Positions 31,975 through 53,700 of a stretch of DNA of 64,000 nt are shown in pieces. How positions within the stretch are numbered: position 1 is the stretch's first letter; the number at the start of each line of letters is the position of its first letter. The DNA is taken from NCBI GenBank assembly GCA_904063045.1, contig CAJFCJ010000019.1, forward strand, positions 2,734,684-2,798,683, read 5' to 3'. The notes under the pieces are model-generated. The model was not told the DNA's origin. It ran no database searches and was given only the letters and a program-made list of their open reading frames with translations. The position numbers and the translations under genes were made by a program. This DNA is from Dimorphilus gyrociliatus (Eukaryota > Animalia > Annelida).

Positions 31975-34184
31975 TCACACAAAAAGATTGGTTTTGTTTG
32001 GTTTGCAACTATCCGAATATTCCAATTTTGGCGATGCTTGCTTATCGGTTTCTATAGTTACTTGAAAATTCAATTGAACAGAAGTCTTATGTTCAGCAGA
32101 TTTCTCATTAGCAGTTTTTTCTCTGTTTTTGTCATATTCTTGCTCTGGAAGAGAGTCGTCGTCGTCGTCGTCGTCGTCCTTTTCTAAAAAATTAAATAAT
32201 AAGGTTTAACAAACTTTTTATGATAAAGTATTAACAAAGATTATCAAAGTTGTTAATTATTGTGGTTGTTTGTCACCATCAGACATGAAACGATACATTT
32301 AATAAGCTGTTAAATATTATTTACCTTCTTTCACCTCTACACTTTCCGGACTACTGTCATTTTCATCCTTTAATATTTCATCAATAGTATATTTCGTTAT
32401 ATGTCTTCTTTTGGTGGCTGGAGGACCTTGCTTTTTATAAGAAGAAGATGAAGGTAGAAATAAGCTTGGCTGGTGGCTCCAGTAAAAAGGGGTTACGTAA
32501 TGTGGAAGAACGGGAAAAGGATTAAACGTCGATGTTGAACTTTGGGTTAACTGCAAGCTATGGTTCGAATCGTTGCTCCCCGACATTGAAGTAGCGTTTC
32601 TTAATATTCTATTTATAGAACTAACGCTTGGAGCCGACTGTTCGTCACAAATCCTTTCTTTCAGCAATACATCACGAATTTCCCAGGCAAATAACGATGG
32701 ATTCTCCTCCTTTATTTTCATTATACGTCGAACTATTATTGGTGTCGCAACATGCTGTTTGATTGATTAAAGGAAATATAAACAAATGTTTATCATATTC
32801 AAAATTTTTATTAAAAAAATTGACATTTGACAAACCTTATTCTTATTCCCGCCAATTGAACCAGGTTTTATGCTACCCGTCTCATAGTACCTCGTTAAAA
32901 TTTTACTAACGCAGCCATGAGAAACAAGTAACTGTCTTGAAATGTCACATGGTCTAACACCCATTAACGCCATTTCTACAATCCTTCTTCGAACTTGTGT
33001 CGGAAGAGGTCGGCCATTAACGAAGACACCGCCCAATTGGTTGACACCGGTTTGCCCTGGAATACGATAATTCAGTCATTCAAATAAACAAAGATAAATG
33101 GCGCACGAAAAAGAATTCAATATCAAAGAAAGCGCTGGTCATTGAAGCATCTTTTAAGTTTCATCTTTCCTTATAAACTGCCCTCTGGCTACTTGACTGC
33201 TGTTTATAGATACAATATGGTTGAATTTAAGAACGTATGCTATCGGATCGATTAGTTATTCGATATTGTTCAGGTGCGTCTCCCCTCCTTATAAATAAAC
33301 GGTGAAAGGATTCACTTTTTTAAACGTTAATGCAATTGAAAGGGGCACGTGCAACTAAACGCCATTTTATGCCGCACCGTTTCAACAGATAATTTTCTTG
33401 AAAAATAGACGTCCGGCAAACAAGCACTTTTCGTCTTTCATGTTGTGAATGATTATGTCTACTTTGACAACATAATTGCATTGAAATTTCTTAATATTGA
33501 CGCAGCGTGTGCGTATATGCGTAAATACGTGCTCCATTTGTGATCGTTGCGGTTGTTCACTTTAAACTTGGTTATCAAAATTCGACAAAAGAGACAATAG
33601 AATTAAATTTAACTAGCTATAATTATTTTTCTTTTTCTTTATTCATTTAAACTAATTGAAGCCTATTTGTTTCAATTTAATGTAACTAAGCTTTTCCATA
33701 TTGTTTACATTAATCCATCAAATTTTGTTACTTTGTATTTAGAAAGGATACAAAATAGCGTTTATCAGAATAAATCCAATAGAAGCTATGACCCTTTAAT
33801 CTTAAAACTCTTTTGTAGCAAAAAAGCATAAAATCATAGAATAATAATTATTTGAAACAAATCTCTCTCTCAAGGGAATTGTTATTTTACAGTCACTTTT
33901 TCATATCTAATTAATTAAAAGAACAAAAAGAGCAACTAAGACATTGTTTTCTAAAAAAAGGGAAATAAATTTAAGTAACAGTCTTACAAGTAAATTTGCT
34001 TTGAAAAGTCTCCAACGTGATGAAATAAATGCTAAAATCTTATCTACATAGTTGGAATATAAGATAGTCTTCTCTTACAATATTGAAATATGAAGAATTA
34101 TTCATGAACTATTTAAAGTAACCGTTAAATAATACGAATCTAGAAACAGGATTTTAATATGGTGTACTAACCAGTATGAGGCAT
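31975..34184 (-). CDS. Poxn: Pox neuro paired-box transcription factor (paired domain + octapeptide, no homeodomain). Exons 34184-34172, 33056-32836, 32754-32325, 32183-31975.
   Basis: A 13-nt first coding exon ATG CCT CAT ACT G|gttagt gives [46 protein letters not shown] and [19 protein letters not shown] match the Poxn subfamily; octapeptide-like YTIDEIL. The last exon is joined via gaag|gtaaat...tttttag and stays open for about 70 codons. Confidence 0.9.
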
Positions 34185-39072: not shown

Positions 39073-39696
39073 TCATGATAAGTAGGATTGGAGTTGAGTT
39101 GGAGCGAGGGGCTGCTGAACAGTTCTTGAGTACGCAAGTGACCAGTAAGAATGTGCGGCAGGCATTAAATGAGAAGGTGCTGGTAGTTGATGGAGAGGTG
39201 CTGGCGGCTGTAAACATTAAAAGAGAGCTTTGAAGATACTGTCGTCAACACTTAAAAATTGTGACAATACCGTATTGTTCACTTCCATATTTTTCCAGGT
39301 TTCTGCTGAATTTTCTTTTGATGGTAAAGTTTGATCGTGCTCCGATATAAGACTTTGAAGAGATTGAATGTAGTCGATTGCTATTCTTAAGGTTTTCACT
39401 TTTGAAAGTCGTTTATGGCGATTTTCGTATGGGATGTGTCGTCTTAAATAAGTAAAAGCTGAATTTACGTTCTGAACCCTCTTGCGTTCTCTTGCGTTCC
39501 TTTTTGCAACAACCTGAACTGGTTTGGCACTATGAGGAACATGCTTGTAAGTTGTGTTGCTTCGTCGCTTCTTCTTTTTTGGAGAATTTTGAATAGTCTG
39601 GAAACTTGAAGGAGAGGTTGGTGGTTGTTGATTATCAGCAAACATGCAGGAAGACATTTTGATCGAAAGTGCTCCAAACTTAGGAGCAGGTTTCAT
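39073..39696 (-). CDS. Achaete-scute-related bHLH transcription factor. Exons 39696-39271 and 39207-39073; start Met uncertain.
   Basis: bHLH VAKRNARERKRVQNVNSAFTYLRRHIP..KRLSKVKTLRIAIDYIQSL. A 63-nt GT-AG intron (acg|gtattg...tttacag|ccg) removes the apparent stop and adds a Pro/Gln-rich 44-aa tail. Confidence 0.85.
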
Positions 39697-46000: not shown

Positions 46001-47684
46001 TCCTGGTCTGTAGGCCTTGGCCGTTGCAGTCACTGTTGAAAGTAACGCATGAATATTTTAGATATAAGCCATATAAAAAGAGTAAATATAGAATCATGTA
46101 TGAATTTGGGTCGAGTAAATATATATATGCGATTAAATAGATGGGTCGACGGGTACAAATTCATGCGCGGCTCAGGCCAGTGATCATGCTTCTTTACAAT
46201 AATTGTTTACGAGAGGTAACAAGACGACTACAGTCTACCTAAGATGTTCCTGACAATGACAGCAATGCTGATGTGGCCTTTGTTGCTGTTGGCTAGTGTA
46301 AATGAAAGAGTATCTGAACGGATCGCTGTTATTTCTAGTTACATCCACTATATAACAAAATTGGGAAGCCGACGCCGGCGTCGAGCTGCTGTACGAGATA
46401 CGGTATTAAAAAATTAATCGCCTCCAGATGGCGATACTCACCTGTAATTGATATTTGATATATTGGAAACATTCGACGATCGCCGGGATGAATGATCGTC
46501 TTCCGATTCACTGTCGATGCTGTCGGAAGCGGACGGTTTTAGTATACTTTTAAAGGTTTTTCGAGGCGATTCCATAGCCCATTGGTCGAAAGCAGCTGCT
46601 ACCGTTAGCGTGTTCTTATTCGGAGAAGATCCGGATTCGTGTGGTGAATCAAGGGGTGTTGCAACCGGAGTGGCTGCAGTATGGGTAATAATTGGAGGAG
46701 AATTGAAAAGAATAGTCGGCGGAGCCGGTGCCGGAGAATTTTGCCCATCGCTACCCATTTTTTTCTCTTTATCCTTATTATTCTTATCAATCATCACTAT
46801 TACGCTTTGCTTTCTAACAGCGGCCGCCGCCGCCGCCGCCGCCGCTGCTGCTGCTGCTTCCTTGTTAGTATTTTTTGCGCCTTCCAAAGATTTTAACTGT
46901 TCTTCTTCTTTTTGCTTCTCCTTTGCTTTTTCCCGTTCCTCGCCTTCAGAGGAGAAGCCTTCAACTAAGATAGCAACCAGTAGATTGAATAATACATAGT
47001 TGCCGAACGTCATAAGAGCAATGAAATAAAGAGCAGCCCATGGGGACGTTTTCGACATGCCTTGGTATAAAACTTCATTCCAATCCTCCTGAGTCAAAAT
47101 CTGTTTGGGGCAATCGAGCGAGAAATTTACTCCTAAATGCCTGGACATCGATTAGAATATTCACTTGTGTAAAGGGTAGAATTTAGCAGGACCGATGCAA
47201 ATCGTTAAGTAATATTGATTACATATACATAAATAGAATACAATTTTGAACGATTTAAAAGTAGGAAAAAAATTCCGTATTAACCCAATTACATCGGTCT
47301 CGCAAAATAAAACTATAATCAGAAAACATTGGGGAGGCAGGGAGAAAACAACACAAAAGGTGCAATAATACGTGTATCTACCTGAAAAACAGTGACTAGT
47401 GCCCACAATAATGAATCAAAGTTTTTTCTCTGTGTCAGACAGCGTACTTCGGAGTAGGAATTGAGATCTTGGCATGAACAAGGCTTGCCATGACGAGATC
47501 CTCCTTGGACCATCGCCAATTTGCCACCGAACAAGTGCATTCCTAACACGCTGTTAATAATATATAGTGCTATTTGTGCAATAAAGGAAAAAGAGGGAAA
47601 AGTTTTTTTTCTTATCTTTTATGTAAAACAATTCCTACTTTTTAAAAGAATCTACTTAAAATATATCTACGAAGTGGAGAGTAA

Positions 47685-47719
<35 letters not shown>

Positions 47720-47720
47720 C

Positions 47721-47761
<41 letters not shown>

Positions 47762-50700
47762 ATATACTAAAATAGAATATGAATATAATATATAATCATG
47801 CACGAAAAAGATAAAAGTGCGAGTTATATTTAATACATTTATATATATTTAAAAATATGCAACTATGATTAAAATTGCAAGGGCTAGATTTTTTTTTCAT
47901 TTTCAGTATTATTCGGTCATTTGACTTTGAATTAGAGCGAAAGTTAATGACACTTCAGACTTACAGATGTGTTTTGGAAAGGAATTTAATAAAAAAAAAC
48001 TGATAATAATAGCAAAAAATAGCCAGAGAAAGGGAAATAAATTTAAAGTTAAGGACAAATGTACAGAAGAGAGTTATTAGACACCTGTTAAGAAAGTATT
48101 AATTCAGAGTATAAAATGTCAAATACAGTTCTATTGATCTCCTGGTAATGAAATATATGTACTTTAGAACGAAGTAAGAAATATTCCCTCCAAGTAATTT
48201 ATTATCATTCTCTTTTCTAGTGTTTTGCAGGTTTTTGCAGTAGATCTTTTTTTATACCCTCCTACACGCATACCTCTTGTAAATATTAATAAAACGAGCA
48301 CAAGGAAGTCTGCATCGAAAATAAAGTAATATTTAAATTTACTATTGATTTCCTAAAGCGAGTAATTAAGTCGTTTTAATTTTAAGATGCTAAGCCTGCA
48401 TTCGAAAGCTTCACCTATTAATCATCCTCTTTATAATTTATTAGTAATGCGTTGAAGTTCTCTTTAAGTTTCACTTGCTTATTACTTGGCCGTATGTGAT
48501 TTCAGTAATATTATTTCTAATATAGGGTGTATTAATGCCAAATTCGCAAAGAATGCTCTTTACAAGAAATGGAAATGGAAGGCGCTGTCTAAAATCCTAC
48601 AATACTCTACTAAAGTATTCACATTTAGACTTTTGTGTAAAGTCTTCCGCATATATATTTTAGTGAAAATAGATCAATAGTATATTCTTTAGGAGAGTAC
48701 ATTTTACATTCCATACTCAAATGAATGTAATATCTTTTTGCTTACAATATTAATAAGATACTTTTCTGTTAATTATCTTTTAGATGTTTACTTTGTGCCG
48801 GTGTAAATCCTAAAATGTGATCAACTTTCATTAATTAGATTCTAACGTCAAATGATCAATAATTTTGAAGAGAAACAAAAAAAAATCAGCGCTACAATTT
48901 CAAACCGAAAACCGACTAATTTACGATTGTTTTAAAGTTGGTATTATATGTTTCATTAAGAGTATATAGTGATAACTAATCTATGTACAATGTATAAAAA
49001 AATTACATTGTGTAATGTGAAGAAATGTAAAATTTAAATGAAATAAAAAATGAATTGGGCTCGTGCTATATACACAACAGGGCGGCCGTCTACCTGGAAA
49101 ACTGTTACTATGGCCCATAAAAGGGAATCGAAATTTTTACGACCGCACTTTCTACGGCCTTCTGCTACAGTCTCGCAGAACTTACAACCGAACAAGTTCA
49201 TACCCAGAATGCTGGATGTAAAAAAAAGTGCGCATCATATATACGTCATCGCATTTGAAGGCGTTTTTTTTATAAATAGATAATTAATGTTACGAATAGC
49301 ACATGCTATACAGTATATACAAAAAATATCAATATATACATATATTTATATATGTATAGTTTTCTTTTGTAATGTAAAGAAATGTTTGTACTTGTATAAA
49401 CTGTACAGATGCCAAAGTATTAATGATATTAAATGAATTAACAACTTACCTGAATATGAAAATAAATAGAACTAGAAGCATGAAGAAAGTTGCTACGTTA
49501 TCCATTGTTCGCAACATCACAACCAACTGATACCTCAAGGCTGGTAGAAATCGTACGAGTTTGAGTATACGCAACAAGCGGAACGTTCTTAAAACAGATA
49601 ATCCTCCAGCGCCGCCCTGCATTAATTCAACTATACTGAGCACCACTATAAAACCGTCGAAGACATTGAAGCCGTTTCTGATGTAACCAAAAGGACCATC
49701 GGCAATAATCTTTAACAGCATTTCAATAGCGAAGACGATGCAGAAGAAAATATTGCTGTATTCCAGCACGAGAGTCAGTGTTTCAGGCTGTATGGAATGA
49801 ATACAAATTCTCACAGCAGGATTCTCTACAAAAATGCAATGATTTTTTTGTGTGCTCTCTTAAAATTTCTCTAATTTCAAACTTTTATGTATATACAATC
49901 AGAGGCTAACACTCTGTAAATTGATCACGATGCATTGAGAGAAAGGCCTATTTAAGCGTTCGCCTAATGGAGTACACAGAGAAAAAGAACAATTAACACC
50001 GACCGGTCGTTGCCAGTCAATCGAGCAGCAATATTCCAGAAAAAAAACACTCGCTGTAATATTATGAGAGAAGCATCTAGATGTGATTCGACCTCACTCA
50101 CCTGTTGCTAAGCAACATATAGATTGACAACTCGCTTGTTAAATGGCTATAAAATAAAAGAAAACCGTTCCTAACTGCCTCGTTCGACCACCATGCATAA
50201 TTTACTAACTTTCTTATTAACCTTTCACCATATTGATATGTAAACACACGAAGTTACCTGATTGTGATATTCGATTCCCATGCTAAGCGTATTGATTAAA
50301 ATCGCTCCTAAGATACCGCGTGTGAAGTAATTGCTGTCGACCGTCTGCTTGACGGCGAAACGCAGCAACTGCCAGACTCCGTGACGATTAGACGCTGTAA
50401 AGAAAAAAAGATAAAAAAGTCAGAAAAGAAGTCAAAAAAAAAAGAGAATATAAAAGAGTAAACAGCAGGGGATAAGGAGAAAAGCTGAGGAGAAGGAAAG
50501 AATCAGAGCAAGAGAGAGAGAGAGAGAGAGAAAGAGAGAGCGACAGAGACACAGAAAAAGAGACAGAGAGAGACAGAGAGAAAAAATAAGTGAGTGGGTG
50601 AGTGGGAGAATAAGCGAGAGAGAGAGAAGAAAAAAGGTAGAAAAAAAAACACAGTGAGAGAGAATGGAGAGCGTGTTTTCGCCAAGACGCTCGTTGATTA

Positions 50701-53700
50701 GCATTATATTTGTACTTGTTATAAACTTACCGTCGTTCTTCGATCGTCCTTCACTCGTTGTATCTTTGTCGTCGTCATCACTGGACGTTTCATCGGAAGT
50801 TTCTTTATCGTTGTCGTTTAGTAACACTACCGGATGTCTTGGAGATGCTTCAACGTCAGAGGGTTCCGGGGTGTTGTCAGTCCCTCGTTGACGGCGTCGC
50901 CGGCTTCGTAAGGTAATTGCCTTACGCTCTATCATTTCCGTATTATTCATATCGTTCTGACGATAAATGCGACGGGCGTATCGCAAAGTTCTTCGCTTAA
51001 CTCTTCTAAATATATGGGCAATATATTTAAGAATTTCTCCATAACAACCTCCTGGTTCCGATAGACTTGCAAGTGTGGAACTGGAATGAAAACGTTTCCT
51101 CTCAGCCAACATCCGTTCCGTTTCGCGCTTCTTCGTTTCCGAAAACTGCGTAGCTATCACAACCAAACAGAGGTTGATCATGAAAAAAGATCCAATCTGT
51201 TTTGGAAAGCAATAAATGAAGATTACACTTTGCAGAATTCTATCTTATAAATAGTACAGGCGCATGCCAGTCATTTCATATAAATATACATCTGTTTGTG
51301 AACTAATATAAAAGACCTGAAAGGAAATGGTGTGAAATGAAAATTACAACCATCTTCAATTATTGTATATATAATTTATATATATATACACACATTTAAA
51401 ATTTGTTTATGAGATATATAGATATAACAGAGGTAAAAATGTTAATTCTATATAAATAGACTTTTCACTATCAATTAACATTTACAAAAGTAATAATAGT
51501 AAAATGATAATAATATTATAAGAACAATAGTTAAAAAATAATATAAGAAATAATAAAGAAATGAAAAAAAAAAGAATTAATGCACTGCGGAAAAAATACA
51601 GGAACAGGCAAAGGCGCGCTTGTCATTCTTGTTTTGCTTCACCTTGGCGCCTAAATAGAAAATGTTTGAGTATAGTAATAATAAGTTTTGGAAGACAACA
51701 GCTGTGCAGGAGGATTTTCTCGATAAAACGATGACTTCTGTCTTGCATTCTCCGCAACCCTACTCACCACTATAAGTGCAACAAAATATATCCAATCCCA
51801 AAACGAGTGCGCATCTTGTACAAAGTACATTATATCTACCCAGCCTTCTAGACTAATCACCTGTGTGTAGGTGTAAGCAAATTTTAGTGCGGTTTCATCA
51901 AACTTACCACAATTAGAGCTACAAAATACATCCAATCCCAAAACGAATGCGCATCTTGCACATAGTACATAATTTCCACCCACCCCGCTAGGCTTATTAC
52001 CTGCATAAGAGGTTAACTGAGCTGAAAGGTGTGTCAGGAAAGAGATAATTGTTTTTATTTACGCGAACTTACCTGAAATATGGCTACCCAAGCTAGACCA
52101 ATATTGTCGAAGGAGATTGAGCCGTGAAACGGGTTATCAAAACCCGGCCTGCAGTCTGAGTAATACTGATTCCAGTTGACACACGAACCGTTCGCGGAGG
52201 AGTTGAAGGAAATGATGCTCTCGTTACAGACTCTGCGTCGACCACCAACCGTTGCAATTGTTGGGGGAACAGCGTCACACTTCATCATACCATCAGTAGT
52301 GAAACGTGAACAAATAAAGTCTTTATCGTTCGGTGCCCGATAAAATTCTACTGGATTTACTTTCGGTACAAGTTCATGCATCGTTTTTAATACCGATACG
52401 TTAACAGGTAAGTTTAAGAAACATCTATTTCGTAACAGTCCAGCCCACAGTTGAACGCCGATTATGCCAAATATAAAGAAAACGAAAAAGCAGAGCAGTA
52501 AAACATTACCAAGCATCGGCAAAGTATCGAGTAGGAGCATTACGAGAATTCGCATACTTGGAACCCGGTTAATCGCCCTTAGTGGCCTCAAAACTCGTAT
52601 AGTTCTAATAGCCGATATACTTAGATTTTCCGAATCAACCGCATATTCAACAGCACCAGCCAAAACGATAAACATGTCCAGTCTATTCCAAGTATCTGCC
52701 AAATACGTTTCCTTACCAAACAGCCCCATTGCGCATACTTTAATGCACATTTCAATGGCGAAAAAGGCGAAAATGAAATGGTCGAAGGCTGCCAAGACAT
52801 GACAGCGAGTTGTCTTACAAATTTCATCTTCGCATGGCCGAAACATTCCCAGTGTAACGCAATTCAGGAGTATCACGCTCATACTGAGCCTTTCGAACCA
52901 TGTAAGTAAGAGTTAAGGAATGATAATTAACTGAGATATATCACTCTACAACATAAGGAACTCGGTATGCTCAGAAACACTTTACACACTTTATGAATGG
53001 ACTATAATACAATGAATAAATAATTGTGCGTATAATGTATAATGTTTGTTCTTAGAGTGTATACAAGTATAGACCCATAATACGCTTATTCATGCATATA
53101 CAAATATCACGTATGAATATACAGTGTTATTGTATACGCTTGTATAGATATATATGTACATAAGGACACACGTACGGGAGTAATGTTTATATTCATATAT
53201 ATGCAGTAGCGTTTATAGCTATACATATATCGCATCCACAGGTATACATCTAAATATAAATGTATAACATATGTTTGCAGGTAGTTTGTTCACTTATGTT
53301 TCAGCTTATATATATATATATATATATGTATAAAATATAAATGTATATATGCAACCATGCAAAATTGTTCTATATATATATATATATAAGATATGTACAG
53401 TATATATATATATCATATGTATCATATTTTATCAAATAAAAACTTTGCGGTTTACACGTATAAATATACGCACAAATACATAAATAGAACACCAGGAAAT
53501 AAATACACGACACCTCTTTAATCTACTTGTCTCTGCTGCTATAGCAACCGAGGCGCATATGTGCGTGTGAGTGCGATTGAGGATGTGTCTATATATTTGT
53601 ATGTGTGTGTGTGTGTGTGTGTGTATGGGTGAATGTGCATGTTTTGTATTCGGATGTGTGTATACGTATATGATATGCGCCTGTTTGGAGTTTGGCGAAC

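Follow-up and report, generated by a model that had tools for sequence, protein, structure and literature searches.

The window, i.e., the whole stretch of 64,000 bp from the annelid Dimorphilus gyrociliatus that was analysed here, contains on its reverse strand a gene for a Cav3 (T-type) calcium channel, in which the exon coding for the P-loop/IS6 segment of domain I is present in two tandem copies, here termed exon A and exon B (Table 1). By cluster look-up, the open reading frames of the window correspond to DgyrCDS11988 of this species, the genome of which is described in PMC7854359. Further downstream in the gene, two exons for the turret of domain II are situated that resemble exons 12a and 12b of other invertebrate Cav3 genes. 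Downstream of the channel gene, a Pax-like paired-box gene and an achaete-scute-like bHLH gene are found (32317-33036 and 39217-39696, reverse strand).

Table 1. Features of the duplicated pore exon and its surroundings (positions of the window), and related domain I exons at loci of other genomes (positions of the respective locus)
Feature	Position	Strand	Evidence or remark
Upstream exon (domain I S1-S5, turret, start of pore helix)	52073..52902	-	ORF; X12 contig 9
Intron between upstream exon and exon A, 72 nt, GT..AG	52001..52072	-	joint 52073>52000 in X12 and X11
Exon A, alternative domain I pore exon, SLAGWVE, 93 nt	51908..52000	-	
Filter codon of exon A, GCG (Ala)	51986-51988	-	
Intron between exons A and B, 47 nt	51861..51907	-	
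Exon B, canonical domain I pore exon, SLEGWVD, 93 nt	51768..51860	-	X12 joints
Filter codon of exon B, GAA (Glu)	51846-51848	-	
Intron between exon B and downstream exon, AT-rich, 571 nt	51197..51767	-	joint in X12
Downstream exon (remaining IS6, start of I-II linker)	50731..51196	-	X12 contig 8
Exon 12a-like, short domain II turret exon, CxxC...C	49094..49211	-	joint 49450>49211 in X9; ORF
Exon 12b-like, long domain II turret exon, three Cys	47382..47550	-	joint 49450>47550 in X12; ORF
Tandem E/A pair loci	L003 (copies L004, L005), L006, L008, L010		SLEGWVD, then SLAGWVN 45-107 nt later
SLAGWVN exon without SLEGWVD partner	L001:1682-1774		no partner in 1.7 kb upstream or in 1.6 kb to downstream exon
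Single SLESWVN exon	L007:10046-10138, L009:6766-6858		no second copy between upstream and downstream exons

Structure and identity of the duplicated exon

Both exons are in phase 0-0, each is preceded by a pyrimidine-rich acceptor (...cag) and followed by a gtaagt or gtgagt donor, and the coordinates, the AG/GT sites and the boundaries at 52073 and 51196 all agree with the two tandem 93-nt exons with intact splice sites that the initial annotation had described. They are neighbouring homologues that agree in length and phase and have splice sites of their own, which is the organization expected of a mutually exclusive pair. The encoded peptides differ at 4 of 31 positions (from exon B to exon A: E>A, D>E, F>Y after IMY, and I>M near the start of IS6). 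Since human Cav3.3 reads WVE and MYY at the matching places, such that these variants occur naturally, E>A is the sole radical change in exon A.

At the DNA level, 17 of the 93 nt differ between A and B, and a recount gives synonymous changes in 12 codons besides the four amino-acid changes, exactly the figures obtained initially by hand; the Nei-Gojobori method counts 13 changes as synonymous and 4 as non-synonymous (pS 0.72, dN 0.06). The repeat finder returned a single direct repeat of 102 nt (82% identity, period 140), which is limited to the exons and their splice sites. The introns around A and B are unrelated to each other, such that the duplication must be considered old. The low dN, the intact splice sites and the splicing into mRNA (see below) bear out the earlier view that exon A is not a decayed pseudo-exon. 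A segment of 13 nt within the A-B intron (51874-51886) is 92% complementary to a segment of the intron after exon B (51397-51409); pairing of the two would loop out exon B, and the match is AT-rich and may be due to chance.

With around 60% identity, T-type alpha-1G, alpha-1H and alpha-1I (Cav3) channels are the named proteins that the domain I exon matches, and the one coral Cav3 fragment that was retrieved is 52% identical. Among the PDB matches to the pore exon, Cav3.3, Cav3.1 and Cav3.2 outrank every Cav1 and Cav2 chain. In an ungapped alignment with human Cav3.1 (6KZO), the exon covers residues 350-380, and the Ala falls on residue 354, i.e., on the domain I filter Glu (E354). The matches and the structure alignment thus agree with what had been proposed from the letters alone, namely that the two exons are a Cav3 domain I P-loop/IS6 pair and that the Ala occupies the filter position. 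Furthermore, the downstream exon resembles the beginning of the I-II linker at other Cav3 loci. The filter motifs read SLEGW in domain I (exon B), TQEDW in domain II, SKDGW in domain III and TGDNW in domain IV, and the 'beacon' Asp following the domain II filter Glu is present (ILTQEDWNE, in the ORF 46438-47148). From these motifs, a ring of EEDD is predicted when exon B is used and one of AEDD when exon A is used, and the predicted ring of the exon A isoform departs, by the Ala of domain I, from the EEDD definition of Cav3.

In the public gene model (DgyrCDS11988; protein P0299, 564 aa, truncated), the segment 51768-52016 of the reverse strand begins exon A 16 nt early and in the wrong frame, retains the intron of 47 nt and is back in frame in exon B, with 52 spurious residues as a consequence. 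Due to this mis-modelled exon A, the annotated protein displays the Glu form only, and the Ala isoform is hidden.

Transcripts with exon A and with exon B

Logan contigs of four runs were aligned to positions 47150-53100. X12 is a run of the same organism (at least 99% match to the window; RNA, introns removed), X11 stems from a related lineage, and X9 is a polyA run. In X12, contig 9 spans 52071-52902 and is joined on at both ends, and the joints from the upstream exon to exon A (52073>52000) and to exon B (52073>51860) have contig depths, a rough and poor measure of isoform ratio, of 196.3 and 241.8, respectively; their sum equals that of the common downstream contig, which holds the joint from exon B to the downstream exon (51768>51196; 438.7). 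In X11, the joint 52073>52000 is found again (depth 5.3). Contig 4 of this run (244 nt) consists of 52205-52069, followed by 51996-51908 and by precisely the 15 nt with which the exon at 51196 begins; by virtue of this overhang, the contig reads from the upstream exon through exon A into the downstream exon, with exon B skipped. Transcripts containing A without B (X11) and transcripts containing B without A (X12) both exist.

The initial annotation had named four joints by which the use of A could be told from that of B. The two joints from the upstream exon and the joint from B to the downstream exon are present in X12, and both exons are accordingly spliced into mRNA, whereas the joint from A to the downstream exon (51908>51196) was found only in X11, by its 15-nt overhang, and is absent among the joints listed for X12. 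The filter codon of exon A, for which GAA had been considered as the alternative reading, is GCG without change in three independent data sets (X12, X11, X9). Contig 4 of X11 differs from the window at 1 of 89 nt in exon A and at 11 of 137 nt in the upstream exon, and only two variants of exon A were observed in relatives, at 51917 and 51941, both of them synonymous and at third codon positions.

A joint from A to B (51908>51860) is absent among the listed joints; contigs drop rare forms. The short A-B intron (47 nt, compared with 45-107 nt at the other loci) may hinder the joint use of both exons. Given that the median intron of Dimorphilus gyrociliatus measures 66 bp (PMC7854359), an intron of 47 nt may still be spliced, and the hindrance is put forward as a suggestion only. 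Contig 20 of X9 (51807-51993) is unspliced, with the 47-nt intron still present between exon A and half of exon B. In X12, the summed contig depth in the bin 51727-51925 amounts to 422.8, around twice what the listed contigs explain, and the bin-depth arithmetic for the joining of A to the downstream exon has no unique solution. Based on the unspliced contig of X9 and the unexplained depth in X12, retention of the 47-nt intron, double inclusion or another transcript form may exist.

Concerning the turret of domain II, the 12a-like exon (with a loose end at 49094 in X12) and the 12b-like exon read into one downstream exon, their loose ends of 27 nt being identical. Depths in X12 are around 281 for the 12a-like and around 182 for the 12b-like exon (joint 49450>47550, 182.5). 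In Dimorphilus gyrociliatus, each of the exons 12a and 12b is spliced. The long, 12b-like form possesses three Cys (C.C...C) instead of the usual five, whereas the short form shows the usual CxxC...C. Cnidarians are reported to be devoid of the exon 12 pair (PMC7382465), which is expected in an annelid. A placozoan source of the window, with which its 33% GC would agree, is rejected because the Trichoplax TCav3 gene has no intron before exon 12 (PMC5379919).

Two further observations concern the RNA data. The donor of the intron in the I-II linker varies (50394>50731 in X12; 50367>50731 in X11, with 24 other letters between), the cause being an alternative donor or else divergence of the relative's sequence. 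Some of the RNA data sets that match the window carry the label 'coral metagenome'; the coral samples presumably hold related worms. A coral as source of the window, to which this label would point, is rejected, since the ORFs are those of DgyrCDS11988.

A-type exons in other genomes

The exon was searched against around 5.8 billion clustered proteins and 1.84 billion cluster representatives, and many of its matches are exon-sized ORFs on unannotated JGI, ENA and Logan contigs. Among the retrieved ORFs are 18 distinct SLAGWVN peptides of 31 residues and six complete SLESWVN ones. Each of these matches is exon-sized, and the residues that flank it in the ORF are unrelated, as for an exon read through into its introns. 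The search for exon A in related genomes that had been suggested at the outset has thus revealed a family of SLAGWVN exons in other invertebrate genomes. All A-type matches are genomic ORFs, and no spliced A-type protein fragment of another species was found among the approximately 420 retrieved proteins.

Five A-type exons were checked at the DNA level, all of them with AG/GT sites and four of them beside a SLEGWVD partner. The tandem pairs (L003, L006, L008 and L010) possess AG/GT sites throughout and are situated between recognisable upstream and downstream Cav3 exons. In these four loci, the order is E-then-A and the outer residue of the A-type exon is Asn, whereas Dimorphilus shows the reverse order, A-then-E, and has Glu as the outer residue. 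When positions 5, 6 and 9 are removed from the comparison, the 31-residue exons differ by 0-8 residues without any clear grouping. The order in Dimorphilus may be due to rearrangement, conversion or independent origin.

Other loci contain a single exon of this kind. The SLAGWVN exon of L001 has no partner nearby, such that either the partner is situated far away or the species, or this paralogue, possesses the Ala form only; the A-type exon of L002 is without a partner on the available DNA. The SLESWVN exons of L007 and L009 keep the filter Glu, followed by Ser versus the near-universal Gly, and have Asn in place of the outer-ring Asp; they may represent a constitutive variant filter. L011 contains a single SLEGWVE exon. 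In the retrieved ecdysozoan proteins, the pore segment, with the sequence EGW[TS][DE], is fused to the upstream exon, and an A/B cassette is therefore unlikely in ecdysozoans.

Between loci, A-type exons exhibit a pS of 0.5-1.1 (i.e., saturated) and a dN of 0.01-0.11. For the filter Ala, all four codons (GCG, GCA, GCC and GCT) are used across loci, which is direct evidence for selection for Ala itself. As judged from these values, strong purifying selection is evident on the A-type exons of other invertebrate genomes. That exon A were included in Dimorphilus through noise in splicing, or as an unproductive consequence of a recent duplication, would agree with the unspliced contig of X9 and with the A-to-downstream joint that is missing among those listed for X12, but it appears extremely unlikely: the duplication is old with low dN, four Ala codons and 18 distinct A-type exons are found, the splice sites are intact in all five exons checked, and the contig depth of exon A is comparable to that of exon B.

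Expected properties of the channel and comparison with known systems

It is fairly probable that exons A and B are alternative domain I pore exons, of which A gives an AEDD channel that is less Ca2+-selective and more Na+-permeable, with changed kinetics. Inclusion of exon A would replace the domain I Glu by Ala and lower the number of ring carboxylates by one. According to PMC7382465, E354 of domain I and D1463 of domain III define the constriction of the Cav3 filter (around 2 angstroms, based on cryo-EM). With Ala in place of E354, both negative charge and bulk would be gone at the narrowest point, and the constriction would be wider. The Ca2+ affinity of the pore would thereby be lowered, and more monovalent current would be expected at physiological Ca2+ in a channel that is low-voltage-activated. 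In classical work on the EEEE locus of Cav1 channels, neutralisation of one ring Glu lowers the affinity with which Ca2+ blocks monovalent current, and monovalent flux rises. The domain I Glu of Cav1 is, among the four, one of the milder positions and one of the least important for Ca2+ affinity, such that the shift in selectivity could be modest.

Activation and inactivation kinetics would probably be altered by exon A, too. Replacement of the domain I filter Glu by Asp in Cav3.1 is described to slow activation, to accelerate inactivation and to slow recovery (preprint, bioRxiv 10.1101/626069). These changed kinetics would also fit an exon A that is genuine and acts mainly on gating, on divalent or proton block or on pharmacology, and not on Na+/Ca2+ selectivity. 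The same holds for the domain I pore module, which sets the activation voltage according to work cited in PMC4436565, and for the Asn that other species possess in place of the outer-ring Asp, a site of outer-vestibule block. Such a main effect on gating or block is nevertheless unlikely: the one residue swapped in every A-type exon observed is a ring carboxylate, the classical determinant of selectivity, and effects on gating and on selectivity can coexist.

The loss of a residue that forms the narrowest constriction (PMC7382465) might also leave the A isoform non-conducting or barely conducting, with a role as voltage sensor, as scaffold or as negative regulator of the surface expression of the B isoform. 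This appears quite improbable, since the whole exon, pore helix and IS6 included, is conserved in its amino acids despite saturated synonymous divergence, as expected for a working pore, and since the depth of A is near parity with that of B in X12. Four-domain channels are not known to multimerise, such that a dominant-negative role would be without an obvious route. Most likely, the AEDD channel would be low-voltage-activated, with weaker Ca2+ selectivity and altered kinetics. In combination with the turret exons 12a and 12b, up to four pore types could be formed from the one gene.

An EEDD ring is reported for all Cav3 channels 'from choanoflagellate to human' (PMC10120453; also PMC5379919, PMC2217349). 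Splicing of pore exons is known from NALCN, where domain II or III contributes either Glu or Lys to the filter, and from invertebrate Cav3, where it concerns the turret exons 12a/12b of domain II (PMC3557258, PMC4436565, PMC9694082). Neither an AEDD ring nor splicing of the domain I filter in Cav3 was found in the literature searched (most subscription journals lying outside it), which for Cav3 describes only EEDD and splicing of the domain II turret, in accordance with the initial statement that no Cav3 with a spliced filter ring is known.

Equally to A and B, exons 12a and 12b, as described for LCav3 of Lymnaea and found in most protostomes, are tandem exons of the pore module, and they belong to the same gene; they are mutually exclusive and tune Na+ versus Ca2+ permeation, and both of them occur, and are spliced, in the window as well. 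However, 12a and 12b concern domain II's extracellular turret and leave EEDD intact, whereas A and B comprise the pore helix and the filter of domain I and alter the ring. The exon pairs 15a/15b and 31a/31b of NALCN (EEEE versus EKEE or EEKE; PMC3557258, PMC4436565) are similar to A and B in that duplicated exons, mutually exclusive in NALCN, swap one ring residue, and their conservation extends over lophotrochozoans and other invertebrates; likewise, exon A alters a single ring residue and is conserved across species. Despite this similarity, NALCN is a leak channel with a charge reversal from Glu to Lys in domain II or III, whereas the A/B pair neutralises a Glu to Ala in domain I.

A naturally neutralised pore carboxylate is also described for an anthozoan Cav3 paralogue without the domain II 'beacon' Asp, for which a raised Na+ permeability is proposed (PMC10120453, PMC7382465). 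In contrast to A and B, this case has arisen by gene duplication and concerns the position just after the ring in domain II (HFS+1; Asp to Asn), the ring still being EEDD. Nav2 (DEEA) and Nav1 (DEKA) are four-domain channels in which, as in an AEDD channel, a single Ala is placed in a ring that is acidic otherwise, and DEEA channels are reported to be non-selective between Na+ and Ca2+ (PMC10120453). In these channels, which belong to another family and have a shorter domain II filter, the Ala is situated in domain IV and is constitutive. The A/B pair is thus the NALCN strategy in domain I of a Cav3 channel, beside the 12a/12b switch, and it is new on the evidence searched.

EEDD is treated in the field as the invariant signature of T-type channels, and Na+-permeable T-type currents of invertebrates are attributed to the turret of exon 12a or, in cnidarians, to a second gene. 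With somewhat less than even confidence, we consider the A-type exon to be an old one, conserved in several invertebrate genomes, that constitutes an overlooked AEDD class of Na+-permeable or non-selective low-voltage-activated channels alongside 12a/12b, with the outer Asp replaced by Asn outside Dimorphilus and perhaps, in some species, as the sole form (cf. L001, and L007 and L009). If this is true, an isoform would be missing from the public gene model of the locus and from the Cav3 alignments published so far, one and the same pore would possess a second independent splice switch, and the exon pair would constitute a natural experiment on the contribution of the domain I Glu to the Ca2+ selectivity and the gating of Cav3 channels.
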